64,000 nucleotides of DNA from Epithemia pelagica (GCA_946965045.2 OX337234.1:3038001-3102000), one strand, 5' to 3'; positions 8,628 to 58,101 are shown, counted from the stretch's first letter. Translations and numbers: made by a program. Notes: a model not told the origin generated them from the letters alone.

Positions 8628-10973
8628 CTAGGAAGGTTGGTAGGATTTCATAACGCTTTGGGCCACGGCGGTGGCAAAGTGGACTGGAACGGCATTCCCA
8701 ATGAGTTGCCGTTGTTGGGAAGGAGTACCACTCAACTTGTAGGTATACGGAAAGCTCTGTAGTGTGGCACGTTCTCGAACTGTCACAAAACGGTTCAAGG
8801 TGTGATGCTTAATGGGTCGTTGACATCGGACCGTTCGAGCAAAGTCGTCGACACATTGACTCAAACGATCGTATTCCTTGTTGGTGGCGGTTGGTGGTGG
8901 TTCGGATGCTGTTTCTTCAATCCTGTGATCGTCAACTTTGACACCGTCTACAAAGACACGACCATTTCCTGGTACGGGTGAAACGTCTGCCAACGGTTGC
9001 AGTGCCTCACGGATTCGTAATTTTCGTGGGACGGGCACTGGCACGGAGGGTAGCTCGACCGTGGGAAGAGCCGCAACGATCCACACACGACTTCGACTTT
9101 GGGGATCTCCATAATCTTTGGCATTGGCAATAAAGATTCGAACTTGATAGTTGAGCAACAGTAAATCTGTAATAATTCGTTCTGGATACGAACGATTGTC
9201 TTTGTGAAGCATACCAGTGACATTTTCCAGAGAGGCAGTGGTGGGTCGGAAGAACTTAATGGCTTTTACAAATTCGTAGGATGCTTCATTGTTGCGGCGA
9301 TCGTTCGTCCCTCCGTTGCGATTGGCGGCCGAAAAGCCTTGACAGGGGGGACTTGCGTGAATGTGATGTGGGAAGCCTGGCTTGGGGTATCCCGGGGCGT
9401 TGTTCGAACACTTGTCCATAAAGATATCAACTCTTTCTTGGTACGTTTCCAGGCCATCGTGTCCCCTGACGTGGAAGCTGGACTCGTTGCGTTCCAGGGT
9501 GGAAATGGCATCGGGACTATGGTCCACGGCGTATTTCGGGATCATACCAGCCGCGCAAAAACCCAACGCAGATCCACCGGCCCCAGCAAACAATTCCATT
9601 AAGATAGGGTGTTCAAGAGCCAGTTTCCGTAGTTGCCCCTGATCTTTGCCTGGAAAGGTGAAGGATACATTAAAGCCTTCGGCATGTTTCTCCTGGTCGG
9701 GGTTATTTTCATAGACGCACTCTGGTGTTGCATCCAATGTCACTCGGTCACCCAAGTTTTTCACCGGAACCCAGAGGTCGGAACGCTGCTTCCAGATCAT
9801 TTTATCTTTGGAATGGTTCACAGCGCGCCAAGTCTCATTTGTTCTTAGCAGTTCTGCCATTTCTCGTCCTAGAAATGTCTCTTGAATGTCAATGTACACC
9901 TCACTGCAACGGGCAACCTTGCGTTGTTGAATACAGCCAAATTCGGCCAGTCGCACAATACAATTCGTTCCCTTTAAAACGAACTGAAAAGTTTCATTCT
10001 CGATGAAAAGGCGGTGCTCGTGAAAGACTCGTGCCCGGTTGTCTTCTAGTCTGGGCCACGTGTGCAAACGTCTCAGAACAGAAGGAGATGATGATGACCG
10101 CGACGATTCGAACCCATCGAATTGGGTCAGGGTCGGGTTGCCCAAGCATTTTCGTCTTTTAGATACAGTTGGGGGTTCCTTCCCGTCAGCTGACTGTAGT
10201 GGCGTGCCATCCTGGACGGAATCAATGGATACCCGATGATGCAGATGATCCGGAGGTGGTTCGGTATGGTTATCAAGATCATGGTCATCCTCATTAGGTA
10301 TCATGTAATTCTGTGTTAAGATGCTCAGCTCTCTCTCGGATAAATCAAGTTGTGACTCACTGTCTTGGACCAGATCGACATATTTCTTGTTGTCACCATC
10401 ATCCATAATATCCTTGTCGTTCTCCAGTTCGATAATGGAATTTATATACGGCTCCGACTGCGATGAAGAAATGATATTGTCTTGTTCTGTCTTCATGTAT
10501 ACAGAGTCCTCATCATTGGGCGGCAGCTTTCTATCTGGGCTGTTGTTTCGGTTCCCGTTTGACACGGCATGTGGAACGCGGGTTTTGGTATCGCCATGGA
10601 CAGCAGATGAACATGTTGGTGTGGGAGGATTGAAAGCATGATCCATTTCCATGCCATGCATACCTGGGTTTCGCTCGTATGATGAATAGCCCATGCCATT
10701 GTTTCTCGTTGTTGGTGTGCTCATGGATATGACAGAAGCTGGGGCTGATTCTGTCGCAACGGAGGTGTTTGTGTTTCCTGCTTGGTTTTGTGGACTTGCT
10801 TGTCTTTCCATCGAATGTTTTCTCATAATCTTGGCCTCCATTTCAAAATACTGAGACGGTAGGCTACCGTAAGAATCATTGTCATCGTCTTCGTCCTCCT
10901 GTTTTATATCGGAAGAGTGATGGAAGTTGTGGGTTCCTGCATTATCGCTTTTCCATCCGTGGTTGCCCTGCAT
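8628..10973 (-). CDS. DNMT4: DNA (cytosine-5)-methyltransferase, RID/Masc1 (DNMT4)-like, copy A
   Basis: Motif I ELFAGAGG, IV HASPPCQGFS, VI SLENVTG, VIII DYGDPQSRSR, IX TVRERATLQSFP, X QLIGNAVP. Post-motif-IV GGTNDRRNNEAS resembles Masc1/RID as recalled. First ATG at 10973 (computed ORF starts at TTG 11024). The C5-MTase call is firm; the subfamily is less so. Confidence 0.88.
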   Translation of the reverse strand: MQGNHGWKSDNAGTHNFHHSSDIKQEDEDDDNDSYGSLPSQYFEMEAKIMRKHSMERQASPQNQAGNTNTSVATESAPASVISMSTPTTRNNGMGYSSYERNPGMHGMEMDHAFNPPTPTCSSAVHGDTKTRVPHAVSNGNRNNSPDRKLPPNDEDSVYMKTEQDNIISSSQSEPYINSIIELENDKDIMDDGDNKKYVDLVQDSESQLDLSERELSILTQNYMIPNEDDHDLDNHTEPPPDHLHHRVSIDSVQDGTPLQSADGKEPPTVSKRRKCLGNPTLTQFDGFESSRSSSSPSVLRRLHTWPRLEDNRARVFHEHRLFIENETFQFVLKGTNCIVRLAEFGCIQQRKVARCSEVYIDIQETFLGREMAELLRTNETWRAVNHSKDKMIWKQRSDLWVPVKNLGDRVTLDATPECVYENNPDQEKHAEGFNVSFTFPGKDQGQLRKLALEHPILMELFAGAGGSALGFCAAGMIPKYAVDHSPDAISTLERNESSFHVRGHDGLETYQERVDIFMDKCSNNAPGYPKPGFPHHIHASPPCQGFSAANRNGGTNDRRNNEASYEFVKAIKFFRPTTASLENVTGMLHKDNRSYPERIITDLLLLNYQVRIFIANAKDYGDPQSRSRVWIVAALPTVELPSVPVPVPRKLRIREALQPLADVSPVPGNGRVFVDGVKVDDHRIEETASEPPPTATNKEYDRLSQCVDDFARTVRCQRPIKHHTLNRFVTVRERATLQSFPYTYKLSGTPSQQRQLIGNAVPVHFATAVAQSVMKSYQPS

Positions 10974-11270
10974 GGTATGATACGTTTGCTTTCTCGTTTT
11001 CCGTTTCGAGGTGATTTCACACAAAGCGTTTGTTGTCCGTCCTTGCTATCTCTCTCACACCTCACACCGGTGCTCCGTGGGGAGCAGTAGTGATGATCCT
11101 CTCGCGTACTCCTTCTAGTAGGAGTAATCACTCCCTCTAATAGAACTTTCTCTTTGGCTTTGGAGGGTTCACTTCAATAGATCAGGATTTGCTCTTTCGA
11201 AGATACACATAAAATGATGAGAGACGCCAATAGAACTGTCATGCCCCGAACAAAACAAAAAGAAAAAAGT

Positions 11271-11314
11271 GTGACAAGGGAACCCCTGCGGCGGTTAACG
11301 TCTTGTGCGCGCAG
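11271..11314 (-). promoter_or_regulatory. Conserved upstream element of DNMT copy A
   Basis: The minus strand carries CTGCGCGCACAAGACGTTAA (11295-11314), identical over 20 bp to 55941-55960, followed by TGTCAC (11271-11276). Confidence 0.7.
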
Positions 11315-11727
11315 GTGCAAGGAAATTAGAAGTTATCGGACCGGCTCACGTTTTGGGGGATATGTGCTCACGGCACACGGCACGCACACCGGCCGAAACA
11401 TGTCCTCGCACAAAATGTCGTTGGCAAAGTCTCCAGACATCAGAATCAGACCGCTACAATACGACCTACCGGTAGATACTACGACAGATCTTCGTCAATC
11501 GTCACTTCCGCGCTCTATTTCCCTACCTAGGCGATCATAAACCTAAAAGCTTCCCCCATCTTTGTTATGAACTTCTTTTGATGCGATATCAATCATGCAT
11601 CGCCTCTAGACAACCGATCCAATAGAACCGTCCCAGATTGTTCAGGAATTCCCCCATGCTGTATGAGCCCAACTTTTCGGGAATTCAATCCCCTGTTAGA
11701 CACTCAGGCTAGGTCATCCCAATCAGT

Positions 11728-14430
11728 CTATGCTTGGACCTTGTCAGTGTCTGCCTTTTGATAGGACTGCCCAATGCTTTGAGCCACAGCTGTGGCAAAG
11801 TTCACGGGGACGGCGTTTCCAATCAGTTGTTTCTTTTGGGGTGCCGACCCACTAAACTTGTACGTAAAGGGAAAACTCTGTATCGTGGCACGTTGTCGAA
11901 CCGACATGCATTGATCCAATACCTGATGCTTTATAGGTCGTTGACACCGCACCGTGGGTGCAAAATCTTGGCATGGACCGAAAGTATCGCACTCGTTCTT
12001 CAGTGTCGTTTCTTCAATGCTGTGATCGTCCACGGCAATTTCAATGCCATTCTGCATAATATGGACTCGGCCATTTCCTTCCACGGGGTCAATACCTTCC
12101 AACGGAGCAAATGCATCCTTAACTGTGAGTGTTCGTGAGGCTGGCGGTGGAACGGGTGGTAGCGGGACAGTGACACGAGCGGCAAAGATCCACACACGAC
12201 AACGACTTTGTGGATCGCCATAGTCTTTGGCATTGGCAACAAAGATTCGAACTTGGTAGTTCATCAAGAGAAGTTCTGCCACAATTTTTTTTGGATACGA
12301 AATACATCCAGGTCGAAGCATGCCAGGAACGTTTTCAAGTGAGGCCGTCGTGGGCTGAAAATATTTGATCGCTCTCACAAATTCATACGATGCTTCATTG
12401 TTGCTGAGGTCATTGGTCCCTCCCGTCCGATTCGCTGCCGAAAAGCCCTGACACGGGGGACTTGCATGAATGTGATCAATATCGTGCGGCTGGGGATACC
12501 CTTTTGTTTTCCTTTCACACTTTTTCAAGAAGATCATGACGCTCTCTTCGTACGTTTCCAGGTCGTGCTTTAGTCCCATAACAGAAAAGTGAGACTTGTT
12601 GCGTTCCAGGGTGGAAATGGCATCGGGATTCAGGTCAACGGCATATTTTGGGATGAGACCAGCTCGTGCGAATCCCAGTGCGGCGCCGCCACCTCCTGAA
12701 AATAGATCCAAAACAGTAGGATGATTGCCTATTGGTTTTATTGGATCCATGCATTCCTCAGTGACGAGTGAAAAGGATGCCTGATATCCTTCACCATGTT
12801 TCTCCTGATTGGGATTAATCTCATATACATACGCAGGCTTGTTGTCTAGAGATACCTTGTCTCCCAATTCTCGTAGACGGGCACAGAGAGTAGTTTCTTG
12901 TTTCCAAAGGAGTAAGTTTTTGGAGGGGTGTTGGTCAATCCACCGTTCATCTTGTATGACTTGATTTGCCATTTCGGGTCCCACAAACGTGTCATCCAGA
13001 CAAATATACATAACATCACAATAGGCGCAATAAAACTTGCGTTTGGCGTCCAAATCAATTCGTGATATGGTGACGAGAAAGCCTTTTCCTTGCATTTCAT
13101 ACTGAAAGGTTTCGCCCACCATAAAGAGTCGATCATCGATGAAAATACTCTTTCCATCGTCGCTCAGTTTTGGTCTGCTGTGTCCACGTTTTGGAGCAAA
13201 AGATGACGAGGATGAACGCGATGAATTGGGCCAGTGATGTTTCAGTGTTGATTTGGTGGTGGAGGATTCTGGTTCCTTCAAAGACGCAATGGGTTCCTCC
13301 TTCACATCTTCTTGTAGAAAGTCATCTGAAAGAACGTCCGTTGATTCTAGATCCGAGCAGTCTGGATCATCTGAGGTAGTTGCCTCGTGCTCGACGTTCT
13401 GATTGTTCTCCGTAATGTTGGTAGGGGTCGGCACACCTTGTGTCAAGTCAATCAATTCCTTCTCCGTCAACTCTTCGTCTTCATCCACCACCAGGTAGTC
13501 CTCGTTGGCGATTTTCTCCTTCCAGAACTGTAATCGCTTCGTATGGTTGGTGGATCCATTGTTTTGGTCGTTATCTCTACTTTTGGTTTGTTCTGGCACG
13601 TTATTGTCATCAAATTTCGTCGGATTTCTGTCATGCTCTTTATTGTTGGTATGCTCATCCAAACATTGATCTTTGGAATCAACATCGGACATTTCCGGTT
13701 GATCACTTTCATTGGATTGGTGATCCTCGGCGTTCTCGTGATCCTCATTTTCACGCGCAGTGCAGTTGCTTTGGTTCGTGGATCCATTGTTTGGGCCGTT
13801 ATCTCGACTGATGGTTTGTTCTGGCACGTTATTGTCATCTAACTTCGTCGGATTTCTGTCATGCTCTTTCGTGTTGGTATGCTCATCTATACATTGATCT
13901 TTGCAGACAATATGGGACATTTCCGGGTCATCACTTGTGTTGGATTGGTGGTCCTTGGCGTTCTCTTTATCCTCATTTTCACGTGCAGTGAAGTTGCTAT
14001 GGTTTTGTGACAAGGAAAAGTGTCGGGTCGTACTTTCCAGGTCGTTACTGCTGTTTAGGTTGCTGTTATGGTTACTCTCATCTTTTTGTGGTTCCCCTGT
14101 ATGACTGGTAGCTTGTTCTCCTGGAGCAAGACTGGGGGTGGTCGTCTCCTTTGTGTTTGTTGTGCAAACCGGATTGGATTTTTTGGTAGACCACATGGAA
14201 TCCAACGTGGATTGGCGTTTGTCCCATGATGCAACACTAGCCGTGTCATTCGTGTTCGATTGGCTGGACACTTTTATCCCCAGCCAGTCCGATAATGTTT
14301 GTTGGCGTCGAGGCGCTCCATTGGGGGTATCATGATGGATTGGTAGGCTCGATCGTTTTCGTTTCTTTTGTTGCTTGGAGGATGATGGCGTCGTCGTGTC
14401 CGATCCTGTCGGGGCTTTGGCGGCCATCAT
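11728..14430 (-). CDS. DNMT4: DNA (cytosine-5)-methyltransferase, RID/Masc1 (DNMT4)-like, copy B
   Basis: DLFSGGGG, HASPPCQGFS, SLENVPG, DYGDPQSRCR, SVRQRATIQSFP, QLIGNAVP. The computed start at 14610 is GTG; ATG 14430 (MMAAKAP) is preferred because the shared promoter motif lies between the two. Confidence 0.88.
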   Translation of the reverse strand: MMAAKAPTGSDTTTPSSSKQQKKRKRSSLPIHHDTPNGAPRRQQTLSDWLGIKVSSQSNTNDTASVASWDKRQSTLDSMWSTKKSNPVCTTNTKETTTPSLAPGEQATSHTGEPQKDESNHNSNLNSSNDLESTTRHFSLSQNHSNFTARENEDKENAKDHQSNTSDDPEMSHIVCKDQCIDEHTNTKEHDRNPTKLDDNNVPEQTISRDNGPNNGSTNQSNCTARENEDHENAEDHQSNESDQPEMSDVDSKDQCLDEHTNNKEHDRNPTKFDDNNVPEQTKSRDNDQNNGSTNHTKRLQFWKEKIANEDYLVVDEDEELTEKELIDLTQGVPTPTNITENNQNVEHEATTSDDPDCSDLESTDVLSDDFLQEDVKEEPIASLKEPESSTTKSTLKHHWPNSSRSSSSSFAPKRGHSRPKLSDDGKSIFIDDRLFMVGETFQYEMQGKGFLVTISRIDLDAKRKFYCAYCDVMYICLDDTFVGPEMANQVIQDERWIDQHPSKNLLLWKQETTLCARLRELGDKVSLDNKPAYVYEINPNQEKHGEGYQASFSLVTEECMDPIKPIGNHPTVLDLFSGGGGAALGFARAGLIPKYAVDLNPDAISTLERNKSHFSVMGLKHDLETYEESVMIFLKKCERKTKGYPQPHDIDHIHASPPCQGFSAANRTGGTNDLSNNEASYEFVRAIKYFQPTTASLENVPGMLRPGCISYPKKIVAELLLMNYQVRIFVANAKDYGDPQSRCRVWIFAARVTVPLPPVPPPASRTLTVKDAFAPLEGIDPVEGNGRVHIMQNGIEIAVDDHSIEETTLKNECDTFGPCQDFAPTVRCQRPIKHQVLDQCMSVRQRATIQSFPFTYKFSGSAPQKKQLIGNAVPVNFATAVAQSIGQSYQKADTDKVQA
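13549..14004 (-). repeat. In-frame tandem duplication, 2 x 228 bp (76 aa), in the N-terminus of DNMT copy B
   Basis: NHSNFTARENEDKENAKDHQSN...NNGST followed by NQSNCTARENEDHENAEDHQSN...NNGST; units at 13777-14004 and 13549-13776. Confidence 0.93.
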
Positions 14431-14530
14431 GCCGTATCCTGAATTTGCTCTTATGCTGTTCGTCTGTGAACTCGATCCAGTTCCATCTCGAGACGAACAA
14501 AATGTCTTTTGCTGCTCCCTCGCTGCGGCT

Positions 14531-14557
14531 GTGACAGCCCAAAAAATCTTGTGCGCG
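14531..14557 (-). promoter_or_regulatory. Conserved upstream element of DNMT copy B, in a divergent promoter shared with URB2
   Basis: Minus strand CGCGCACAAGA (14547-14557) followed by TGTCAC (14531-14536). Confidence 0.6.
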
Positions 14558-14805
14558 TGGGGTGGTGCTGCGAAAACCATCCCCCCATGCCCCATGCTCG
14601 CGCCCGTCACGCCCCGTTCGCTCTTTCGAAACGACGCAGGTCAGACGCCAGAGATCCTTCCAACACATCAACTACAGTTCCAGATCCACCATCCATCAAT
14701 CGCATCCCGTTTTCTTGAACAGGAGACAAGATCAAGCAAGTAAAGGAACAGAACTGCACTAATACCTCGGAGTTTTCTTTCTCCGTCAAGGGTAGAATAT
14801 CAGAT

Positions 14806-23273: not shown

Positions 23274-23416
23274 GTAGATGCAAATAAGATCCATGACATT
23301 GGGGACGGATCTTTTTCCGCAGTCAGAAGTCAGAAGGTGCTGCCAAAGATTCTTGTCCGATATAGTTCGCAGTGTTTCCCATAGCCACAAATCTGGTCGG
23401 CACAGTTTCTCGCACC

Positions 23417-25405
23417 ATGAAGCTCAGCACCGTCTCTCTCCTCCCTCTTGTCCTTTGCTCCACACAGGCCTTGAATGTCATCTTGACGAACGATGATGGC
23501 TTTGAGACCGAGCTAATCCAATCTCTGTTTCGGACCCTCCGCGATGCTGGACACGACGTTGTCATGTCGGCTCCCTACGAGGGCTACGAGGGCCAAAGCG
23601 GCACCTCTGGAAAGATTGACTTTCTCCGCCCCATTTTGCCAACGTCCGAGGCGAGTCCTGGAGGCACCCTTCCAGCCGGATCTCCGGGAGTGGGACCAAC
23701 CACTGTGGAGGACAAGCAGTTCTATGTGAACGGAGCCGTCACGGGCGCTCTTTTGCACGGCATTGACGTGCTTGGTCCTCAGTTTTTTGGATCGCGCGAC
23801 GGCATTGACCTCGTCCTGTCCGGTCCCAACGAAGGCTCCAACACGGGCTTGCTCACGCCCCACTCCGGTACTGTGGCCGCTGCTGTCACTGCCATCAACA
23901 AGGGTATTCCTGCCATGGCCATGTCAGCCACTACCGATGAAGCAAACCCCGAGCTGATTGCGCAGCTCGCTCTCAAGGTCATTGACACCACCTTTCCCAC
24001 CCTTCAAAGCCTGGAAGGTGAAAACCTTGGTTTCAATGTCAACTTTCCCACCACTACAGATGGAACTACAGCGGACGACTACTCTTTGGTGGCCTCCAAG
24101 ATCGGCTTGAACGGATTGGTGGGCCTTGAGTTCATCCTCGACATGACCGAGTGTTCCTTTGCATCCGGTTTGCCCGCCTTGCCCGGCATGTGTTTGGCGC
24201 TCCCCATCACGTCGGCAGGGTACCCCGAAGACTCTGATCCTTTGAGCGAGTACAACGTCATTACCGGCTCCGACAATCCTCGTCAGATTGCCATCTCGTG
24301 GATCGATGGCACCTACGCGGCTACTCTTCCCGAAGGAGTGGAGCTGGATTTGGGAGAGGCGTTGCCTTCCCCCAATAGTGTTGCGAATCCACTCAACATT
24401 ATCCTTACAAACGATGATGGATTTGAGACTCCTCTCATTCAGGCCCTTTTCTTTGCCCTGCAAAATGCTGGTCACAACGTTGTCATGTCGGCGCCGTACG
24501 AGGGTCAGAGTGGAACCTCGGGTCTCATTCAATTCCTTGCTCCGCTCGGACCTACGGAGAATGACAGTCCTGGTGGAACGATTCTCGCTGGAGCTCCCGC
24601 CGTCGGTCTCACCACGCTCGATGGTGTCAACGGCAAGCAGTTTTACGTTGCTGGCGCCGTCACTTCGGCCGTCACGCACGGCATTGATGTGCTGGCCCCC
24701 CAGTTCTTTGGTGGCACACGGCCCGATCTGGTCATTTCGGGTCCCAATGAAGGCCAAAACACGGGTGTTGTGACGCCCCACTCGGGGACTGTGGCCGCTG
24801 CCGTGACGGCTCTCAACAAGGGCATTCCAGCCATGGCCGTGTCAGCAGATGGGGACGAGGCCAATCCGGAGTTGATTGGTGCCTTGATGGTCAAATTGGT
24901 CGAAAATGTCTATACCAGCATCCCGGCTGGATTTGGCCTCAATGTCAACTTCCCCGCCACGACCACGACCGGTTTGGGTGCACTGGATACCTACACATTT
25001 GTCAATAGTGTCGTCGGACGCAATGCCATTGTGGGTCTCAATTTCATTATGAATTTGACCGAATGTGCCTTCCTCGGTGGCGCCGGTGCGCCCTCCCCGG
25101 GAATGTGCCTTGGTGCTCCCATTGAGTCGGTGGGATACGAGGCGGACTCCAATGCACTCAGTGAGTTCAACGTCTTTAACAATGACCCCTTGGCTGTGGC
25201 GGTATCCCCCATCCAAGGTACCTACCAGGCCGATGTCTCGTTGGGGCTCACCTTGGAGCCAACGTCAGCGCCCACAATGGCACCAACGGAAGCTCCATCC
25301 ATGGCAACTTCTTCGGCCGCGTTCGTGGGTGACTCCGCCGGCAATCATGTCGTCGTCACCCTCCTTGTGTGGACCGTCTTGGCCGCCGTTGGCCTCGCCT
25401 TTTAA
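23417..25405 (+). CDS. surE: Secreted, probably GPI- or TM-anchored 5'/3'-nucleotidase with two tandem SurE domains
   Basis: Signal peptide MKLSTVSLLPLVLCSTQA. Two complete sets of SurE motifs (ILTNDDGF, GQSGTSG, SGPNEG.NTG, HSGTVAAA, FNVNFP). S/T/P-rich linker and hydrophobic C-terminus. Confidence 0.92.
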   Translation: MKLSTVSLLPLVLCSTQALNVILTNDDGFETELIQSLFRTLRDAGHDVVMSAPYEGYEGQSGTSGKIDFLRPILPTSEASPGGTLPAGSPGVGPTTVEDKQFYVNGAVTGALLHGIDVLGPQFFGSRDGIDLVLSGPNEGSNTGLLTPHSGTVAAAVTAINKGIPAMAMSATTDEANPELIAQLALKVIDTTFPTLQSLEGENLGFNVNFPTTTDGTTADDYSLVASKIGLNGLVGLEFILDMTECSFASGLPALPGMCLALPITSAGYPEDSDPLSEYNVITGSDNPRQIAISWIDGTYAATLPEGVELDLGEALPSPNSVANPLNIILTNDDGFETPLIQALFFALQNAGHNVVMSAPYEGQSGTSGLIQFLAPLGPTENDSPGGTILAGAPAVGLTTLDGVNGKQFYVAGAVTSAVTHGIDVLAPQFFGGTRPDLVISGPNEGQNTGVVTPHSGTVAAAVTALNKGIPAMAVSADGDEANPELIGALMVKLVENVYTSIPAGFGLNVNFPATTTTGLGALDTYTFVNSVVGRNAIVGLNFIMNLTECAFLGGAGAPSPGMCLGAPIESVGYEADSNALSEFNVFNNDPLAVAVSPIQGTYQADVSLGLTLEPTSAPTMAPTEAPSMATSSAAFVGDSAGNHVVVTLLVWTVLAAVGLAF

Positions 25406-25710
25406 TGTTTGTGGCGGTCGACGTCATTGTAGTTGCATATGGGCTGCTGTAAAGTCTTTTCTAATGGCAGTGTTAAAGTGGTCTATCTTTCTCTACGAAC
25501 CATCTCGAGTTCCTATACCTTGCTAATAACTATGTGTCTCCAGAAAAAACGGGAAGGTACGTGCTCGGCTCATGCCCTGTAGAATGGCTGCCCTCTACCA
25601 CTATAATCGACGAGTGTGGTCGATAGTGGGATTGATTGGCACTTGCCGATTCGTGGCGTTCTCTCGGGTTTGATTCCGTGCCATGCGCACGTGTCATGCT
25701 TGTCGACTCT

Positions 25711-31084: not shown

Positions 31085-31089
31085 CCACA

Positions 31090-38471: not shown

Positions 38472-41149
38472 TTAGTCAACGTTCCTCCATTGTTTCGGCA
38501 AGACATCATCCCTCAAACCAATCGGATGTCGAAAGACTCCCTGTGATGGAATTCAAGTTGCACGACAAGGCTGGGTTAGAAAAAAATCTTGTTGTTGCAC
38601 CACATATGTTCCATGCTGGAGCCACATAAGCCACGTACCGGTAAATGTTGATCGCTGGCATAGGGTTTGACAAAGTAGCGAATACTGGATCGTGGATAAT
38701 GCACCAGCAGTCGGGGCACCTCGTGGTGGTACCACGGGAGTTCGGACCGGTCCACCAGGGGACTGGGATGGATGCGAACAACATAGGAATTTCGATGTTC
38801 CTCTTGTTTCCACAAGACGGTACAGGGCCAATGCATGCCATCGTAATGATTGGCATAGCCCTTGGTCGTGTAGTATTCGTATTGACTTCCATCGTCGGCG
38901 TACTGTTTCAAGACGTGAGCGGTGGTGGTATTGGCATGCCACTGGGGATTGGGCGTTTGGTAGACGGGATCTTGATCCAATTCCGAGGACCAATACACAC
39001 AAGCCGTCATGAGGTAGGGATGTTGGGGTTGATACAAAAAGTCGTCCTTACGACCCGTCAATTCTGCCAAAATGGGTTTGTTGGCACCCTCTTCATTGGC
39101 TTGCTTGGCCAAGACCCACTGATCCCGGGAGATGGGTGTGGTGGGTGGTGGTTTCCACCGTTGGACATGTTGGTGCCAGGCTCGTTCCCAGGCTTGTCCA
39201 TAATCGATAAAGATTTCTTCCCCCGGTTGAATGTCCCGTAAGGCATAAATTTCAAAGGACAATCCTCGCAGTTCCTTTTGGGCCAGTTCCTCCAAGGATT
39301 CCTGTCGCCATTGATCCGACGTGGGATCCCATCCACTGTAAAGTGTGTGGGTGTGGATCAAAATTCGAGAAACAAGCAGCACCAACACCCAAACAGACCA
39401 AAGGATTGACATGTGAGACTTTCTACTACCCTGTCGTTGCACATGACACGGTTGCGAAGCTTGACGCGTACGTACCTGGACCATCGATAATCGGCATTGG
39501 GTCCTTGGGGACCACATTGCTTGGTGCGTTTGCTGCAATGATTAATGAGAACGGCATTGGTGGTTGGACACAAGAGGACGGTACTGTGGGGATTGGAAAA
39601 GCAATAATTCATCAAGAGTTGGGTGCCGACTTGACGGGGTGGACCCTTCTTGTTCGATTCTGGTTTCGTGGTTTGGGTCTGGTTGGTGTGGTTGTCGTCG
39701 TCTTGGTCATCTTCGTCATCCTCTTCGTCATCGTCATTGACCGTGTCGGGATCGTACAGGGCCAAGACATCTTTATCCAGGATATGCAACAAGGGTGCCA
39801 TGGCAAGGCGGTCCCCTTTTTGAACCGCAAATTGCGCAAAGCCGCCTTGTCCGGCATGGGGCAAGGTACTGCGCTTTGCCACCAGGGTTTCCAAACACAT
39901 GCCATGCGCTCGAATCCATTCTGGAGTTCGCGGTGTCACACCCCGGGTCCGGGCCAAGTATTGGGGCAAGGTGTCGCGCGTCAAGGGTGCCGCCGCCAAC
40001 TTTTGGACGTCTTGCCGAGTTTCCGGCAAGAGTTGGTGGACCAAATAGGCCTTGACGGTATCGGTATCCTGGGTGGTTTCCAAGTCGTCATAGACGACCG
40101 TTCCCGTCGTGCGATTGTATGCAAATTCTTTGGTCGCGTGCGGTCCAATGCGACGCCACAAGAGGTCGGCCGCCGCTTCAAATTCGGCCGGCATGTAGGC
40201 CGTGTGCGTCCATCCGGGACCCTTGCCATGCTGACAATAGCCATAACTCATGAATAATTCTTCTCCGGCCTTTACGGCACGCGTCGAGACAAATTCGCGG
40301 CCCTTATTGTACGAAAAGGCGCCCGCTCCGGGCGAGGTGTAGCGGGGTGCCATGGAATCGTCGTAGGGGGCATCGTGCGGATAGCCGGGATCCAAGCTGG
40401 CCAAATCGCAATGATGATTGGGCAAATAGCCAAACCCAATTTGAAAATCGACACTGTCGATACCGGCTTCGTACGTGACATGATCGGGCACACCGCGTCC
40501 CCACCAATAGGGATTCCACAAATTAATCCAATGCGCTTTGAGTTGATATTTGGGAATGCTCGATTGGACTTGATTGTAGCCTTCCACCGGAATGGCCACG
40601 CCATCGGGTCCCCCCAAGACGGGTTCGTCCTTCCACAGTGGTTCCGTTGTGTAAATGCCATAGCCTGGATTGCCCTTGAGTGAGGAGGGTGCGATATAAA
40701 TACGACCTGTCGTCGTAGAGAGAGAGAAAGAAAGAAAATAACAACAACAACACACGTGAGAAAGACCAAAGACCCAAACCACACTAGACGACAACAGCAA
40801 AGGGATGTCCTAAAGAAGAGTGACCCATGTATGGTACACGAGACAGAAAACACGTACATTGTCGTGGTGGTTCCGGGGTGCTTTGATTGTAAAAGGCCTG
40901 GTCCTTGCGGCTGGACGACGACTTGGCTTGGTCCCAAAAAGTGGTGGTCCGCGACAAGCCCAGAGTCTTGGTGGAGGGCAAGGACAAGATATAACAATAC
41001 ATGGACAGGGCCAAAATGGCCACCAGCATGGCAAAATTGCGATGTTTCTTGGTGCCGCCCGTGGGCTTGTTCATTATCATTATTTTGGTGTTGTGCTTGG
41101 TTCTCGGAGTGGGTACCATTCTCATGTGCTGCTGAGAGGCAACCGTCAT
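38472..41149 (-). CDS. Signal-anchored double SET-domain protein, paralog A, 4 exons
   Basis: Exons 41149-40858, 40706-39476, 39335-38639, 38540-38472 with GT-AG introns. SET motifs YIAPSS..GYGIY, PNHH, GEELFMSYG; second SET domain STLPHAGQGGFA, LINHCS, GEEIFIDYG; end DQHLP/GVFRHPIG. The start ATG is the least certain part. Confidence 0.85.
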
Positions 41150-42750: not shown

Positions 42751-45376
42751 ATGTCGTTGCTGCCTCACTCTCGCAATGGCCGCATGATCTTGGCCATTCT
42801 CGCCGTGGCTCTGTATTCCTATTACATTTCCTTGCCCACCTCCATTCTTCGACAACCATCCTCTCGCAGTCCGTTTCGTGCCGCCTCCTCCACGTCTTCC
42901 TTTTATTATTACAACGACCAGGCACTCACCAACCAATCCACCCAACGACAGTGTACGTATTCTTCATCTCGACAAGGGCATGGGTTGTTCCTCGACAGCG
43001 ACATGTCTAACGATCCCTTCTCTGTCGTTCGGATGATTTGTTTCAGGTCGCATTTACGTTGCACCCTCTTCACTCAAGGGCAATCCTGGCTATGGCATTT
43101 ACACGACGGAACCGCTGTGGAAGGGCGAACCCGTCTTGGGGGGACCCGATGGCGTCGCCATTCCCGTCGAAGCCTACCGTCAACGCCAGGGTCCCAAAGC
43201 CGCCTGGAAATCGCACTGGATCCACTTGTGGGATCCCTATTGGTGGGGACGGGGCGTCCCGGATCATGTCGCCTACGAGGCCGGATCCGGTGATGTGGTG
43301 GATTTTCAAATTGGCTTTGGTTATTTGCCCAATCATCATTGCGATTTGGCGAGCTTGGATCCAGGATATCCCCAAGATGCCCCCTACGACGATTCCATGG
43401 CACCTCGATACACGTCGCCCGGCGCTGGGGCCTTTTCGTACAATCGGGGACGGGAATTTGTGTCGACTCGTACCGTGCAACCGGGGGAAGAATTGTTCAT
43501 GAGTTATGGGTATTGCGACCATGATGACGCGAGTGGTCCCGGATGGACGCAAACGGCCTACATGCCGGCCGAGTTTCAAGTGGCGGCCAACCTCTTGTGG
43601 CGTCGCATTGGTCCGCAGGCCACCCAACCGTTTGACCTGGACGAAACGACGGACACCATTCGGTACGACGCCCGTGAAATTCAAGGGATTGTTACCGAGA
43701 CGACGAATGAAACCGTCAAGGTCGAGTTGGTTCTACAGCTCTTGCCCGAAACCCCGCAAGACGTCCAAAAATTAGCGGCCGCACCCTTGACCCGTGACAC
43801 CTTGCCGCAGTATTTGGCCCGTACCCGGGGTGTTACACCGCGGACTCCGGAATGGATTCGAAAACATGGCATGTGCTTGGAAACCCTGGTGGCCCAGCGC
43901 AGTACACTGCCGCATGCCGGACAAGGCGGCTTTGCGCAATTTGAAATATCGAAAGGCAACATGATTGCCATGGCACCCTTGTTGCATATCCTGGACAAGG
44001 ATGTCTTGGCCATTTACAAAGACAATGACGACGACGACGACAAGAATGACAAGGACGCAACTCCCCAACCAGTCGGAACCCAACTCTTGATGAATTATTG
44101 CTTTTCCAATCCACACAGTACAGTACTCTTGTGTCCGACGACCAATGCCGTTCTCATTAACCATTGCAGCAAACGAACCAAGCAATGTGGTCCCCAAGGA
44201 CCCAATGCCGATTATCGATGGTCCAGGTATGTGTGCTTGTGGTGGGCGTTTTTCGGAATAGGTTCTTTGAGTGCCTCTGACATGTCTGATTCCGGATTTG
44301 TTGGTCTTTGATGGTAATTCTCGCGTCCCTTGTTTTTTGTATTGTATTTTCCTGGGTTGGTTGTGGTCGTCCATTTGAAATGAAAACAGTGGTTGGGATC
44401 CCACATCCGAAGCCTGGCGCCAGGAATCGCTCGAGGAACTCGCCGCCAAGCGCTATCGGGGATTATCGTTTGAGATTTATGCCCTCCGAGACATTGAACC
44501 AGGCGAAGAAATTTTTATGGACTATGGCGAGGCTTGGGAACGAGCGTGGCAAGACCATGTGCAACACTGGACGCCTCCTCCTTCTTCTTCCACGTCCGTA
44601 TGGATATCGGCGGCCGAGGCCAATGCCAAGGGGGGACCCATTTTGCCGCAACTTGTGGTGACTACCCAGAGTTTGACCGCCAACAATCACACGGTTCAGG
44701 TGGATACTGCCATTCAGGACGACTATCTCATGACCGGTTGTGTGTATTGGGTCACGGAAATGGATTTCGATCCACTCTATCAAGACACCAAAGCCTGGGA
44801 GGCCTCCTCATCCTTGACCATGGAACAAATCTTGAAACAGTACGCCGACGACGGTGAAGAATTTCAATACACGAATCCGCAAAAGGGATATACACAACAC
44901 GAAGATGGATTGCATTGGCCCTGTACCGTCTTGTGGCAGGAACAAGAGGAGGAGGATGGTGAACTCTTGGATACCTATGTCGTTCAACTGCATCCCAGTC
45001 CTGCGGTATCCGAGGAGGATCTCCCCTGGGCCAAACATCACATTCCACGTCTCTTGATGAATTATCCGCGATCCAGTGTTCGATACTTTGTCAAACCCTA
45101 TGCGAGCGATCAACATTTACCGGTACGTCATGAAAAACAATAGGTCCAGCTGACACAAGAAGCTGTCTATGAAATGGGGAACTTGTTGTGGACCTGGTCT
45201 TATACTTGACTTGTTGTATTTCTTTGGGTTGATTGTTTCTGAATTCTTTTCTTCCGTGGTGCAAATCGTATTATTCCTTTCCTGTTGGGACGATGGATTC
45301 GAAATAGGGTGTATTTCGGCATCCTATTGGTATGCGCGACGATATCTTTCCCAATCAATGGAAAAACATTAAGTAA
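42751..45376 (+). CDS. Signal-anchored double SET-domain protein, paralog B, 4 exons
   Basis: Exons 42751-42952, 43047-44226, 44390-45122, 45308-45376. Intron positions, phases and motifs are the same as paralog A; hydrophobic anchor MILAILAVALYSYYISL. Confidence 0.87.
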
Positions 45377-46841
45377 CATGATGTGTTCTACTAGACTACA
45401 TACGGATATGCATATCAGACGTTCAACGGGATTACAACGCACACATTCACACCGACATAATCCCCGGCCCCAACGGGGGGCCGACACAGTTTAAACGCCC
45501 CACTACTGTGCCAACTCACCGCTTAGGAGTCCCATCCATAGCCTTTCGTGATGACTTCGGATTTTCATGAGATTGAGATGGGTTTTCATGAGAAACCGAT
45601 ACATCGACCACCACTGGTCACCACAACAACCTTTAATCTGTCTTTCTTATTCAGTTACTCGCTACTAGCACAACCTTTGCTCTAAACGAAAGATCATGAA
45701 TGATATGCTACCTGAATCCGTCACCATGAGCACCAGCCGGAGCACAGACGTTGGGACTGATGATGCAGGAGTATCTGATGGCAACCTACCGAGCTCTATT
45801 CAGACGCCAGAGCTCCAAGCAGCTTTCGACAAACTTCATCAAACATTCAACCCAGCAAATGTGCCCCTGACAGTTGACAGTTCTTTGTGGCAGGAGATCA
45901 GGTCCACTTACGCCTTATCATTGGAAGAATGTTGCGCGCTCCAGAATTACGCTTGTTCCCCTCGACCTCGTGGTACCTTGCCACGCATCGAGGGCGGAGC
46001 TGTCTACCGGGTCTCTGAAGAACGTGTCCGCGCCAAGTTGACCATCTCCAATGTAAGAGGTTTTCGTCATCGGTATGTAATGGAGGCAGAGTTGTTGGTA
46101 GACTCTGGAGCAAACACGGAACTGAAACTTCCTGCACGCATGGTTCGACAACTCGGCCTTGAAACCCGTGGCAGTCTTCATTGCCGTGGCTCCACGAATG
46201 ATGTTAGAACCGTGTTGATATTCTCTCCTGTCTTTGTCCAAGTCACGTTCATCCGAGGCGGTGTCCAGGAGAAAATTGAGGCCGATCTGAGTGTCCAATG
46301 TGACCAACTCGAGTATGAGGCGGAGGCTAGCTCTCAACCTGGACCAGCGGAAAATGGGGGTGGAGACACGTTGGACACACCACAAGCGCCTCAACCGACT
46401 ATAACAGGTGCAACCCCTGGCAACAATGCTGAGACCAGCCGTATCCCAGTGGTAGATCTCTCTTACCACGAACCGGGCACACGATGCTCCATACCAACAA
46501 GCTGTCATTGGAATCCATGGAATGAAGAAACTTCGGTTGCATCCCAACAGTGAACGCCAGCAGTTGGAAATTAAAAAAGATGAAGTGATGGATGAATATT
46601 GATCGAAAGTTGATGACAGATTATTTTCTGACGACAAAAGAGTTTGAAACTCCCTAAAGACAAGCCAGTTGGTTCCATGATGTGTATTGTCCAACTGCAA
46701 CTCACAGATTAGTCTGTTTAATGCTAGACTGCCAGGGGCATCCTATTGGTATGCGTGACGATATCTTTCCCAATCAATGGAAAAACATTGAGTAACATGT
46801 GTGTTCTACATTTTAGAATATATGCATACCAGGCGGTTAAC
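45318..46841 (+). repeat. Dispersed direct repeat of about 105 bp (45318-45427 and 46737-46841), a copy of the SET-B last exon and 3' UTR
   Basis: GGCATCCTATTGGTATGCG(C/T)GACGATATCTTTCCCAATCAATGGAAAAACATT(A/G)AGTAACATG..TGTGTTCTAC...TATGCATA occurs twice in the same orientation. Confidence 0.92.
45696..46602 (+). CDS. Clan AA (retropepsin-like, AF_0612-type) aspartic protease; apparently frameshifted near 46460
   Basis: LLVDSGAN catalytic motif, LKLPARMVRQLGL. The expected C-terminal hydrophobic-Gly segment QAVIGIHGMKKLRLHPN...LEI is in the +1 frame and stops at 46600-46602; the computed ORF stops at 46553. Confidence 0.72.
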
Positions 46842-51526: not shown

Positions 51527-52456
51527 TATCACGTCCTACTTCTTTTCTCGTGGATTGGGTGTTTCAGCGCTTCTTCTCAAAGACCAAAGAATAGGGACGA
51601 GAGGGAAGATACGAGATCAGCACATGTCTCAATCTGGTGTTTTTCTGGGTCATTCCGATTGTTGTAGAAATTTTCCTTTTCTCCCTCATTCGCTTGTCAC
51701 CGGCCACAAACGCTGCAAAACTGCGCGACTCTTCGGTCCAGGAACTCCAACCAAAAGATGAGGGGAGGCGAACCTGCGTCTTTAGGCCGACAAGTCTGCC
51801 GGTGACACTCCTAACTATTTTTGGTGAAAGAGCTCGTTCTCGTGCGCAACGGAGCGACGGCCGACCTCAACGGCTCGTATTCAAAGATTCTCTACTTGCA
51901 AAACGGTGGACATGCGTATTCTTCGGAGTATGAAGCGACCGACGGTCGCCTCATGGGGACGCATGATCCGTGACTAATACACGGGACCCAATCCACAAAG
52001 GAGTGGCGGTTGCCGTTGACAAGATTCTTCGCCTTGAAACTGGCGAACCACAGAGCGGCCAGCTCATCCGGCTTTTGGATTTTGGTGCCTACCACAGATG
52101 ACACACACACTTCTCTCTTGGTTTTTGTGTGTTTTGGGTTGTCCGCATTCATTCAGTTTTGGATTTGGATATCATCCCCCTCTTGCTCTTGCCAGATTGA
52201 TCGACAACTTTGTTGAATCTGACAGAGATTCTCTTTAGATCTCTCTCTGGTTATTCTTTTTCAAGAGAGGATAACAAAAAGAGAGACAGAGAGCGAACGG
52301 AGGACACGATACTGCGAAACAGAGGGCAATCCAGATTTGCTGGTTGGAAGATTCGATTGCGGGTCGTTCGATCTACTACGACATTCAAAAAAGAAGACAA
52401 AGCAACAACAACAACAACAACAACAACAGCAGTAGAGTGAGAGTGGATGCCAACGA

Positions 52457-55132: not shown

Positions 55133-55473
55133 TAATGACAGGTGCGGGATGCAACAACAACATTACGTGCAGGAGAAGCACTCACATGTATATATATTAT
55201 AGAAGAAAGGCTCCCATCGCAACGTTGGTCGTTTCTTTTTTTGAACCAACAGACGTACCTTATTGCTCTGGTATTTTCCGTTTTGTGTACATACACCAAT
55301 GCAAAAGTTGACCGTCGAGAGTCAGAAACGGATAATATGAGATTGTCCTTTGGAGGGAACTATGAGGCTACCGAGTTGAACAAACGTTGACGAAAGGAAA
55401 GAAAGAACCCAAGCCACTACGATGGTAGCGCTACCACTTGCCCATGGATACTAGAGACTGGCTTATTGTGATC

Positions 55474-55731
55474 TCCGATAACAAGCACCCAAAGGACGAC
55501 GATGACACCAATCCCGGTGGCTCGACCAAGTCGCAACAAGAAGATGTCATTCATTCTCAACAACACAATCACTATCATTATGGGATTCACCTCACCTATT
55601 TGGGGAATGATGAACGACAACCATAGAGAGTCGACAAGCATGACGCGGAACCAAACTACCTACCTAGAGAGAACGAAAGTGCCAATCAATACCTCCATCG
55701 ACCGCACAAGGTAGCACAGCCATTCTACAGG
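55474..55731 (+). pseudogene. Truncated inverted copy of the DUF1769 gene's 3' end and 3' UTR
   Basis: Matches the reverse complement of about 25576-25873. Encodes STKSQQEDVIHSQQHNHYHYGIHLTYLGNDERQP* versus STKSQQEEDAIHWQQHNRYHFGIQLTYLGNGERQP*, and shares UTR blocks such as GAGAGTCGACAAGCATGAC, AAGTGCCAATCAAT and CAGCCATTCTACAGG. Confidence 0.9.
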
Positions 55732-55940
55732 ACCTTAGTCTCCGTCTTGCTGGCCGCATAACTGCGAGTAGTGTAGGAGTATAAGATCTCTGGAACATAG
55801 ATTATTGTTATGATATCCGTATTGGAGTACCTTGCACTCCATATTAGAGGATTGACCTAGGCGCGACTACCATGCGCCGAAGCACAGACGGAGGAGGAGT
55901 ACCTCCACTCCGACTCCGAGCGCGAAAGGACTGCATCCCC

Positions 55941-55982
55941 CTGCGCGCACAAGACGTTAATGGCTGTTCCGAATTTTGTCAC
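55941..55982 (+). promoter_or_regulatory. Conserved upstream element of DNMT copy C
   Basis: CTGCGCGCACAAGACGTTAA (55941-55960) followed by TGTCAC (55977-55982), about 220 bp before the ATG. Confidence 0.7.
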
Positions 55983-56181
55983 GGTCACACTTTGCACTTT
56001 GGGCTTTACTCCTCCCTCACAAAAACCAAGACAAATAATCATCCCCATCCCATTTTTTAGTAGTTGATTCTGATCTCCTTTTGCCCTTTTGTCCAACGAT
56101 ATACCAGTATTGTCAGGTGTCGTTGGATAGGGAATCAAAGAATCTGAATTATCGAAGGAGTACGTAATAAACTCTTTGAAG

Positions 56182-58101
56182 ATGGACCAGGACGATTTTT
56201 CTCTGGCATCAATCATGGAGGAGGCCGACGATGACGACATGACCGATGATGACGAGTACATGGAGAGTAACGGCATCATCGTTCAAAATCCATTGTCACC
56301 TTCAACCGGTCATGATATAAAGACTTTCGGTGATCTCGTCCAAGACATAATGTCACGTTCAACCGGCGATGACGAGGACATGAAGAAATACGCTAATCTC
56401 CTTCAAGACACCGAATCACCCTTGGACTTGACGGAACAGGAACTTTTCCTGTTTACACAAGGCTATCCTCTTGATGACGAAAAGGCTATGGACCACGACG
56501 ACAAGAAAAGTGATCCGGTACATTCCATTTCCGATTGCTCCACATCGGACGAAGAGGATTGGAAGGAGACTGAAACAGGGTCGTTGAAAAAGAGAAAGTA
56601 CTGGAGTTCCACCCTTACACAGAATGGCATTTCCTTGTCCAAGCGGCCGTCTTTGCCTCGTGATGTTTCCAAGAATTATGTGACGTACAAAAAGAGGAGT
56701 TTCATGAACAACAATCGACTTTTGGAAGTCGGCCAAACGTTTCGGTACTCAATAAAGGGAACACCCTGTTTTGTGCGGGTTGCTCGCTTTTGCATGGAGA
56801 TAAAGCGTCGTTTCGATTGCGCATACTGTGACGTTGTATATATTGATATACAAGATACCTTTCTCGAATCTAAACTCGCAAAGGCACTAATAAAGAGCGA
56901 AACGTGGCTAGCTGTCAACCACTCGAAGGATAAAATGAACTGGAAGCAGCGCTCAGATGTATATGTGCCCTTGGCCAAACTAGGAGAAGAAATAACTGTA
57001 GATCGGGAGCCAAAATGGACCTATGAGATTAACCGAAAGCCGGGAACGCATGGCGAAGGCTATGAAGCGTGTTTTACATACTCTGATGATGATGAAGTGC
57101 CACATAGAGCGAAGCCAGAACGCACTTATCCGAACGTACTTGATTTGTTCGCCGGCGCCGGTGGGGCAGCTTTGGGATTCGCCAAAGCCGGTATGTGCGT
57201 CAAGTACGCAGTGGATAATAGTCCAGCAGCAATTGCAACGCTCGAACGGAACAGATCCCACCTTCAAATCGCTGGCCATGACGAAGAAATGGTCACCTTT
57301 GAAGAACCCGTCAGTGTTTTTCTGGATCGAAGTGAGAAGAGAGAACTGGATTATCCCGAACCTCAAGATATTGACCATATCCATGCCAGCCCCCCTTGCC
57401 AAGGCTTTTCGACTGCAAATGTGAAAGGAGGCAAGAACGACGCAAGGAACAACGAAAAATCACTTCAATTCATGAATGCAATAGAGTTGTTTCAGCCCAC
57501 CACAGCCTCGTTTGAAAACGTGACTGGCATGCTCCGATCCAAGCATCGAGGTTATGCACAAAAGATTGTTTCTACCTTGCTTTTGAAAAAATATCAAGTA
57601 CGAATTTCCATCACGAATTCATGGGACTATGGTGATCCACAAAAACGATGTCGTCTCTGGTTATTTGCTTCCCGTCCAAATGTCGAGCTACCGGACGTTC
57701 CACCTCCGGTCAAAGAGAAGAGACGACTACGGGAGGCGCTTGGTCCCTTGTCTCGAGTTCTGCCCACACGTGGAGGTGGTCGCGTTCGAGTCGACGGAGT
57801 GATTGTGTTGGATCATTGCATTGAAGAGACCAAACTGAAGAAGAACTGTGAACATCTAAGCCAAACAGTTGGAGGGGCGCCCACGATCCTGTGTCAAAGA
57901 AACATTAAACACCACTTTTTGAACAGGTGCATCACGGTTCGAGAACGTGCAACGATACAGAGCTTTCCCCTTACATACAAGTTCAGCGGTACTTCTCGGC
58001 AACAAAAACAACTCATTGGGAACGCAGTTCCCGTGAACTTTGCCTGGGCTGTGGCCCAAAGCTTTGCAAAATCGTATCGTCTACATCTGGCTGACATCTA
58101 G
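56182..58101 (+). CDS. DNMT4: DNA (cytosine-5)-methyltransferase, RID/Masc1 (DNMT4)-like, copy C
   Basis: DLFAGAGG, HASPPCQGFS, GGKNDARNN, SFENVTG, DYGDPQKRCR, TVRERATIQSFP, QLIGNAVP; first ATG at 56182. Confidence 0.88.
   Translation: MDQDDFSLASIMEEADDDDMTDDDEYMESNGIIVQNPLSPSTGHDIKTFGDLVQDIMSRSTGDDEDMKKYANLLQDTESPLDLTEQELFLFTQGYPLDDEKAMDHDDKKSDPVHSISDCSTSDEEDWKETETGSLKKRKYWSSTLTQNGISLSKRPSLPRDVSKNYVTYKKRSFMNNNRLLEVGQTFRYSIKGTPCFVRVARFCMEIKRRFDCAYCDVVYIDIQDTFLESKLAKALIKSETWLAVNHSKDKMNWKQRSDVYVPLAKLGEEITVDREPKWTYEINRKPGTHGEGYEACFTYSDDDEVPHRAKPERTYPNVLDLFAGAGGAALGFAKAGMCVKYAVDNSPAAIATLERNRSHLQIAGHDEEMVTFEEPVSVFLDRSEKRELDYPEPQDIDHIHASPPCQGFSTANVKGGKNDARNNEKSLQFMNAIELFQPTTASFENVTGMLRSKHRGYAQKIVSTLLLKKYQVRISITNSWDYGDPQKRCRLWLFASRPNVELPDVPPPVKEKRRLREALGPLSRVLPTRGGGRVRVDGVIVLDHCIEETKLKKNCEHLSQTVGGAPTILCQRNIKHHFLNRCITVRERATIQSFPLTYKFSGTSRQQKQLIGNAVPVNFAWAVAQSFAKSYRLHLADI

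Follow-up and report, generated by a model that had tools for sequence, protein, structure and literature searches.

Among the C5 cytosine DNA methyltransferases (MTases), ZMET2/CMT3, Neurospora DIM-2 and Kwoniella DNMTX are enzymes of the DNMT1 superfamily in which a BAH domain is combined with the catalytic domain. The diatom DNMT4 family, with members such as Thaps3_11011, Fracy1_250079 and Psemu1_285042, was reportedly described by Ponger and Li in 2005 and by Huff and Zilberman in 2014. We analyzed a stretch of 64,000 nucleotides from Epithemia pelagica (GCA_946965045.2 OX337234.1:3038001-3102000; hereafter the window), in which three open reading frames (ORFs), referred to as copies 1, 2 and 3, are paralogous nuclear genes of the published diatom-specific "diatom DNMT4" C5-MTase clade. 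They belong to a lineage-specific expansion of this family into four lineages, A to D, of which copies 1-3 represent A, B and C. The family itself was previously known; new here are a predicted BAH-like domain in front of the catalytic domain, a promoter motif common to the copies and, at the site of copy 3, the swap of one paralog-bearing cassette (C) for another (D) in a sister genome (ENA ERZ21939226, contig ctg1356l) that is collinear with the window on both sides. These are the features most worth following, above all the cassette swap.

DNMT4 has been recorded in 31 of 60 diatom species, with its function given as unknown, and the diatom enzymes were placed next to fungal RID with moderate support (Hoguin et al. 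2023, PMC9998398). A 2025 phylogeny confines RID/DNMT4 to fungi, classing as "orphans" the other enzymes that are specific to a lineage (PMC12344493), so the literature is at odds on this kinship. The fungal Masc1/RID enzymes are peculiar in two respects, motif VI reading EQT or EET and the target-recognition domain (TRD) being short, at ∼80 aa in PaRid (Grognet et al., PMC6709928). The domain table in the supplement of PMC9998398 lists BAH (PF01426) before a short PF00145 in several fungal RIDs and only PF00145 in diatom DNMT4; BAH is stated to be absent from RID/Masc1 in another review. Diatom DNMT4 is among the few eukaryotic DNA MTase families without a known role, and no knockout has addressed it, since the family is missing from the model diatom Phaeodactylum. 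An earlier note on this DNA, made from the sequence alone, knew of no role described for such a system in diatoms, which stands as far as the role is concerned, but the family had already been described. Multiple copies are not unprecedented, since more than one DNMT4-like gene has been reported from Fragilariopsis and Cylindrotheca fusiformis has two family genes on one scaffold.

The three ORFs span less than 50 kb and are all uninterrupted, with the same coordinates under which the earlier note had listed three full C5-MTase genes without frameshifts (table 1). Each ORF matches PF00145 (C5 cytosine DNA methylase) with E values of 5e-38 to 9e-45, and this is the only Pfam match of the MTases in the window, no RFD, CXXC or embedded chromodomain being detected in them with Pfam. 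Aligned with one another, the three copies are conserved over their last ∼470 residues, and motifs I (FxGxGG), IV (SPPCQGFS), VI (ENV), VIII (QxRxR), IX and X (GNAVPV), all of which had been read from the sequence before, are invariant. The catalytic motifs stand in canonical order in all three copies and are invariant or nearly so in a 45-sequence alignment of the family, as are E296, N297 and V298 of motif VI. The tract after motif IV, recognized earlier as GxND..N, is present as GG.ND..NN and is conserved family-wide. The variable or target-recognition region, rightly called very short, comprises 93-101 residues between motifs VIII and IX in copies 1-3; over the matching TRD interval, copy 3 has 69 residues against 168 in Arabidopsis MET1, and is thus ∼100 residues shorter. 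A tblastn search of the 64-kb window found no fourth copy or pseudogene fragment.

All three proteins have a common layout. The tail is acidic, of low complexity and fast-evolving, and it includes a short basic run resembling a nuclear localization signal (NLS); it is followed by a conserved domain of ∼130 residues, predicted to be BAH-like, and then directly by a complete MTase domain with a short TRD. The gene call for copy 2 in the sister genome begins at the equivalent of residue 79. Within the otherwise unalignable tails an acidic motif, [DE]L[TS]E.EL..[LF]TQ, is kept in copies 1-3 (10300-10380, 13380-13470 and 56400-56480, respectively). A pattern search did not find it in the sister paralog D or in the Epithemia protein, and it may be a protein-interaction motif.

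In a FastTree phylogeny of 219 rows, the diatom sequences (78 rows) group together with a Shimodaira-Hasegawa-like (SH-like) support of 99, apart from the bacterial enzymes. The window proteins share two clades, one of 49 rows and one of 78 (SH-like support of 99 in each case), with P0039, which is jgi_Psemu1_285042 and is labelled DNMT4 in the supplement of Hoguin et al. 2023 (PMC9998398). This bears out the membership in the DNMT4 type known from diatoms that had been proposed for the copies. Their nearest relatives among the matches listed all come from diatoms (Cylindrotheca, Thalassiosira profunda, Fragilaria, Epithemia, Amphora and Pseudo-nitzschia), and diatom and bacterial proteins took up the best 120 and best 150 matches listed. 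Like other members of this diatom-restricted family, the window genes have PF00145 as sole Pfam domain, to which some relatives (P0009, P0010, P0011 and P0020) add an N-terminal chromodomain (PF00385). The locus differs from what is described for the family in that four recent paralog lineages exist, three of them within one 50-kb stretch, that one site alternates between two paralogs in sister genomes, that the copies have a promoter motif in common, and that a BAH-like fold is predicted, published domain tables listing none for diatom members.

In our alignment the paralogs share a conserved stretch of ∼130 residues immediately ahead of motif I. This pre-domain can be recognized in many more proteins of the family, in each case immediately in front of the catalytic domain. 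An AlphaFold2 model of copy 3 (aa 150-639) reached a mean predicted local distance difference test (pLDDT) score of 90.6 and a predicted template modelling (pTM) score of 0.90, and its best matches in the PDB are MET1, ZMET2 (TMq 0.65-0.69 for ZMET2), DNMT1 and DIM2, all of them BAH + MTase enzymes. When the pre-domain was modelled alone (pLDDT 85), BAH domains made up 50 of the 50 top PDB matches in Foldseek, among them DNMT1 BAH1, ZMET2, ASI1, EBS, TNRC18, PBRM1, BAHCC1 and ORC1, all weak (E 2e-3 to 5e-2, TM 0.40-0.45). A profile of the pre-domain matched 237 cluster representatives in a database of 1.84 billion proteins; 127 representatives were new, and 99 of these have an MTase domain, the remainder being short fragments. 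PF00145 was present in 88 of 88 representatives scanned and PF01426 in 0 of 88. The pre-domain also occurs in a family member of the centric diatom Thalassiosira profunda and in DNMT4 of the pennate Pseudo-nitzschia multiseries.

From these models we predict that the pre-domain folds like a BAH domain, and the resulting layout would be at least compatible with that of the RID, DIM-2, CMT and DNMT1 group. The order of domains, BAH (here BAH-like and predicted) and then MTase, is the same as in ZMET2/CMT3, DIM-2 and DNMTX, and these enzymes are the best structural matches to the whole model, ZMET2 at the TMq given above; BAH enzymes of the DNMT1 superfamily are likewise the best PDB sequence matches for the family profile. 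The diatom copies differ from that superfamily in having no chromodomain inserted in the MTase domain, no RFD and no CXXC, in the shorter TRD, and in a BAH-like domain too divergent for Pfam. In structural terms, the predicted module would link the family with CMT, DIM-2, DNMT1 and RID, and not with the bare bacterial enzymes.

Comparison with the sister genome allowed selection on the copies to be assessed. Copy 1 and its ortholog P0002 are 93.9% identical at the protein level and copy 2 and P0003 91.2%, with neighbouring genes at 90-99.7%; synonymous divergence (dS) between window and sister is 0.05-0.08. Ortholog pairs were used for the ratio of nonsynonymous to synonymous divergence (dN/dS) because synonymous sites are saturated between the paralogs, at 45-55% protein identity. 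For copy 1, dN/dS is 0.40 overall, 0.35 in the BAH-like and MTase part and 0.50 in the N-terminal tail; for copy 2 the corresponding parts give 0.24 and 1.17, and the Urb2 gene of the window gives 0.46. These values indicate that the folded parts are under purifying selection and that the tails are nearly free of it; the suspicion that the copies are under selection was therefore correct. The locus offers a lineage in which the DNMT4 family has recently expanded under selection. Window-sister identity is a mosaic of 89.5-99.8% per 500-1000 nt, which suggests recombining lineages or introgression rather than uniform divergence. The cyclin gene (2679-3704) has a dS of 0.004, compared with 0.05-0.08 in neighbouring genes.

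A promoter element shared by the genes, also put forward in the earlier note, is real: the 11-mer CGCGCACAAGA occurs at exactly three sites in the 64 kb, even with one mismatch allowed, one upstream of each gene and each in the orientation of its gene (table 1). A shared 9-mer or longer was obtained in 0 of 200 shuffles. Upstream of copies 1 and 3 a 21-nt block around CGCGCACAAGA is identical, and in all three cases a TGTCAC element lies 20-30 nt downstream of it. The copy 2 site is inside a 375-nt divergent spacer common to copy 2 and the Urb2 gene (14806, plus strand). In the sister genome the motif is kept upstream of A and B, and D has a one-mismatch version. Since the remaining intergenic DNA between the copies has lost all similarity, the motif appears to have been selectively retained. 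It is a candidate regulatory motif, and we reasonably infer, from the sequence pattern, that the paralogs are co-regulated through it. At the opposite end of copy 1, a hairpin-forming element (TTGGCTAAC...TAGCCAA, then GGAAGAAATGT) lies 3' of the stop codon at ∼8598-8627 of the window, and the same element is conserved after the stop codon of lineage D (sister locus L002, ∼12490-12520). It may be a common 3'-end signal of the family.

Lineages A-D and the Epithemia gene form one clade (support 100/99) with the topology (Epithemia, ((C, A), (D, B))). Support is 100/97 for the clade of the four lineages and only 83-84 for the inner pairs, and C and D as sisters are not rejected (approximately unbiased [AU] test, p 0.44). 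In E. clementina the single related gene adjoins the ortholog of the gene at 58499-59875, which identifies the third site, that of copy 3, as the ancestral one. This E. clementina gene (JBGMNV010000180.1, L005) has one reading-frame change (∼11775-11790) between motif VIII, which reads QGREG, and the TRD; the change may be a frameshift in a pseudogene, a small intron or an assembly error. Synteny of the A-B pair near the cyclin gene is absent in E. clementina and in a third genome (ERZ25042306), and the MTase of the latter, P0126, is not at the third-site position. One ancestral gene beside the gene now at 58499-59875 has multiplied into lineages A-D in this diatom's lineage, with A and B in tandem next to Urb2 and the ancestral site holding C here and D in the sister genome. 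The simple local triplication envisaged earlier does not describe this arrangement, given four lineages and a third site that differs between the two genomes.

At the third site, DNA homology to the sister genome breaks off at 55468 and is taken up again at 58499, where the neighbouring gene has its stop codon. The sequences in between resemble each other only weakly, at the level of domains, and in a ∼55-nt element of the 3' flank, and the flanks of the cassette are 91-97% identical up to both boundaries. The sister genome has at the same place a 3.7-kb cassette with paralog D (P0004, 794 aa), which is 43% identical to copy 3, and copy 3 has no ortholog in that genome. Paralog C was not found elsewhere in the sister genome, nor D elsewhere in this one, the protein cluster of each having a single member, and no relics of D were found in the window flanks or of C in the sister flanks. 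An inverted copy, 153 nt long, of the 3' end of a Duc1-domain gene 30 kb away lies at the left edge of cassette C, which indicates a past rearrangement at this boundary. The comparison covers two genomes, and a search with the flanking gene found no relative, and so no further third-site haplotype, in JGI metagenomes. A natural paralog swap at one site between near-identical genomes is a ready-made comparison for methylation specificity.

Taken as a whole, the explanation that we consider reasonably likely is that the copies are DNMT4-clade paralogs with a four-lineage history that carry out canonical DNA methylation, are gated through a BAH-like module and are co-regulated. The canonical cysteine (PCQ) and glutamate (ENV) chemistry would allow S-adenosylmethionine-dependent methylation of cytosines, with DNA as the presumed substrate; the BAH-like module would position or gate the enzymes on chromatin, as in CMT, DIM-2 and DNMT1, and the upstream motif common to the paralogs would switch all of them on together. 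Judged by their sequences, the enzymes are probably active, nuclear, chromatin-linked DNA cytosine MTases, and a role in the silencing of repeats is conceivable. Several observations weigh against this explanation. The BAH-like call is based solely on predicted structure, with the weak Foldseek scores given above, and at the sequence level no BAH domain was found by Pfam at E values up to 10 or by a profile search against the PDB. CpG observed/expected is ∼1 across the window, so there is no trace of heavy CpG methylation in it. The 219-row tree was built with FastTree only, with bacterial outgroups only and without DNMT1, RID or DNMT3/5/6 references. Two diatoms with methylated transposons have no DNMT4 at all (PMC9998398), and DNMT4 is therefore not required for transposon methylation. 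Sequence similarity alone does not settle a eukaryotic versus a bacterial origin, since the best single-domain bacterial enzymes in a large database reach 213-243 bits on the family profile, compared with 207-211 for DNMT1, MET1 and ZMET2; M.HaeIII scores 166, DIM-2 144, M.HhaI 115 and DNMT2 65.

These scores bear on the proposal that the copies are orphan MTases that an early diatom domesticated from bacterial or viral ancestors, which do not read chromatin and might act on RNA or as selfish or defence-type enzymes. Their TRD is short, of bacterial length, the best non-diatom matches among those listed are bacterial, as are the single domains with the highest profile scores, identity to M.HaeIII is 23% as opposed to 14-17% to DNMT1-type structures, and eukaryotes commonly have orphan DNMTs that they gained by transfer (PMC12344493). 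However, M.HaeIII and M.HhaI are outranked by DNMT1, MET1 and ZMET2 on the family profile, and DNMT2 is far lower. An apparent closeness to Bacteroidota enzymes of ∼740 aa proved to be an artefact, these proteins having two tandem MTase domains of ∼190-230 bits each whose scores were summed. A eukaryote-type fold, BAH-like by prediction, precedes the catalytic domain throughout the family, some members carry chromodomains, synteny is stable, and no restriction enzyme, transposase or reverse transcriptase was found beside the MTase genes, which have cyclin, Urb2, Cu-oxidase and similar neighbours. We regard such an origin as improbable and favour a eukaryotic chromatin-type enzyme, to which the modelled BAH-like domain and the chromodomain-bearing relatives point. 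It is similarly unlikely that the copies are functional counterparts of fungal RID/Masc1, which would detect duplicated DNA in the sexual stage and then methylate or mutate it in a defence resembling methylation induced premeiotically (MIP) or repeat-induced point mutation (RIP). The likeness to RID/Masc1 drawn in the earlier note holds for the short TRD (93-101 aa, ∼80 aa in PaRid) but not for motif VI, which, as the same note had seen, is the canonical ENV in all three copies, and indeed across the family, and not the EQT/EET signature. With RID, Masc1, DmtA and PaRid the copies have in common the catalytic cysteine of PCQ and a compact build in which one N-terminal beta-rich domain directly precedes the MTase; in several RIDs this is BAH (PF01426), so that the fungal layout of BAH and short PF00145 (PMC9998398 supplement) matches the BAH-like domain and short TRD seen here. 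The published trees that put diatom DNMT4 beside RID with moderate support (PMC9998398) are contested by the phylogeny that confines DNMT4/RID to fungi (PMC12344493). Neither the three genes nor the window show a RIP-like dinucleotide bias, which concerns the footprint and not the activity: the RIP indices are normal, with TpA/ApT at 0.43-0.54 and (CpA+TpG)/(ApC+GpT) at 1.17-1.27. Diverged tandem and inverted duplicates persist intact in the window, and several paralogs have been kept side by side, unlike in the fungal systems. A RID-like role in repeat mutation or premeiotic methylation is conceivable but improbable, and the one sequence signature that would define it is missing.

Whatever the enzymes do, the third site calls for an account of its own, and one that falls a little short of an even chance in our estimation is differential loss from an ancestral D-C tandem, with A-B perhaps a block copy of it, this genome having lost D and the sister C. 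In the maximum likelihood tree C groups with A and D groups with B, at support of 83 and 84, as duplication of a two-gene block predicts, the 21-nt block is common to the upstream regions of A and C, the foreign Duc1 fragment, placed precisely where cassette C has its left junction, resembles repair filler, and neither paralog is found elsewhere in the other genome. Yet two independent clean deletions would be needed within a dS of ∼0.06, after long coexistence, no trace of the lost gene is left in either flank, nonhomology extends through the 3' flank as far as the stop codon of the neighbour, and the topology is weak, C and D as sisters being compatible with the AU test. We give less credence to a balanced polymorphism, in which C and D would be old alternative, idiomorph-like cassettes at one locus of a species or species complex. 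This would accord with the clean swap of gene, promoter and 3' flank between flanks of 91-97% identity, with the intactness of both cassettes, each with the promoter motif or its one-mismatch version, with a C-D path length of 1.36, ∼25-45 times that of orthologous pairs (0.03-0.05), and with the identity mosaic, as expected for recombining lineages. Against it, flank divergence has no clear peak at the cassette, no link to any phenotype is known, and the two genomes on which it draws may or may not be conspecific. Its fullest form, in which C and D segregate as alleles in one species complex and give strains different methylation specificities, strikes us as very improbable; if it were true, the alleles could serve during mating to mark self versus non-self DNA, or could be associated with mating type. 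A lead only, in this respect, is the 32-kb sex-determination region of Pseudo-nitzschia multistriata, which contains only MRP3 and a "methyltransferase" of unstated type, whose expression is unrelated to mating type (bioRxiv 10.1101/2023.10.11.561864).

Table 1. Features of the DNMT4 locus in window coordinates
Feature	Position	Strand	Residues	Remarks
Copy 1 (lineage A)	8628..10973	-	781 aa	ORF + PF00145
Copy 1 acidic Ser/Asn-rich tail			aa 1-320	
Copy 1 BAH-like domain (predicted)	9642-10013	-	aa 321-444	
Copy 1 C5-MTase domain	9573-9599 to 8682-8699	-		motif I to motif X
Copy 1 ENV	9219-9227	-		motif VI
Copy 2 (lineage B)	11728..14430	-	900 aa	ORF + PF00145; from ATG at 14430
Copy 2 NLS-like KKRKR			aa 22	
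Tandem duplication in copy 2	13544..13999	-		228 nt, 87% identical; in disordered N-terminal tail
Copy 2 BAH-like domain (predicted)	12754-13131	-		
Copy 2 MTase domain	12685-12711 to 11803-11820	-		motif I to motif X
Copy 2 ENV	12328-12336	-		motif VI
Copy 3 (lineage C)	56182..58101	+	639 aa	ORF + PF00145
Copy 3 BAH-like domain (predicted)	56716-57093	+		
Copy 3 MTase motif I	57139-57165	+		
Copy 3 MTase motif IV	57388-57411	+		
Copy 3 ENV	57514-57522	+		motif VI
Copy 3 MTase motif X	58018-58035	+		
Cis motif CGCGCACAAGA (11-mer)	11301..11311	-		328 nt upstream of copy 1 ATG
Cis motif CGCGCACAAGA	14547..14557	-		117 nt upstream of copy 2 ATG
Cis motif CGCGCACAAGA	55944..55954	+		228 nt upstream of copy 3 ATG
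Cassette C	55469..58498	.		no DNA homology to collinear sister genome
Inverted copy of Duc1-domain gene 3' end	55495..55647	+		source 25690-25845 (last ∼45 codons + stop); ∼87-91% identical

The other large ORFs of the window are ordinary eukaryotic genes, encoding cyclin, Urb2, SurE, Duc1, sulfotransferase, Kelch, SET, 2OG-Fe(II) oxygenase, LRR and multicopper oxidase proteins. Every MTase copy is flanked by such host genes, in an order conserved in the sister genome. The cyclin has 80% identity to its Epithemia clementina counterpart, and the other best named matches are to raphid pennate diatoms, which places the host among these, near Epithemia. The nearby transposons mentioned in the earlier note were not recovered: Pfam detected no transposon domain in any window ORF of at least 200 aa, and Copia and piggyBac proteins of a related genome had no tblastn match in the window. 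Rfam and tRNA scans of the window were empty. The third genome, ERZ25042306, has many more transposons near these genes than the window has, its cyclin ortholog being surrounded by piggyBac-like DDE_Tnp_1_7 genes (L004) and the family member P0126 lying between two Copia (RVT_2) elements (L006).

Duplications are found elsewhere in the window as well. An inverted duplication (38633-40709 and 43044-45128) has arms of ∼2.1 kb that are 76-90% complementary and separated by ∼2.3 kb, and the arms carry ORFs with weak SET-domain matches. The SurE-domain ORF at 23372-25405 contains an internal tandem duplication with a period of ∼920 nt (23480-23960 versus 24401-24878, 74-77% identical), which results in two SurE domain stretches in one ORF. 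Direct repeats of 63 nt at 45318-45380 and 46737-46799, 97% identical and 1419 nt apart, bracket an ORF without a known domain (45696-46553); both repeat regions are matched in the sister locus, which ends too early to cover the intervening DNA. The same 2.6 kb at 5478-8057 can be read without interruption for more than 800 codons on either strand (859 aa for the minus and 840 aa for the plus strand), neither ORF having a Pfam match, and the minus-strand product, with its low-complexity N-terminal half, looks like a real protein.

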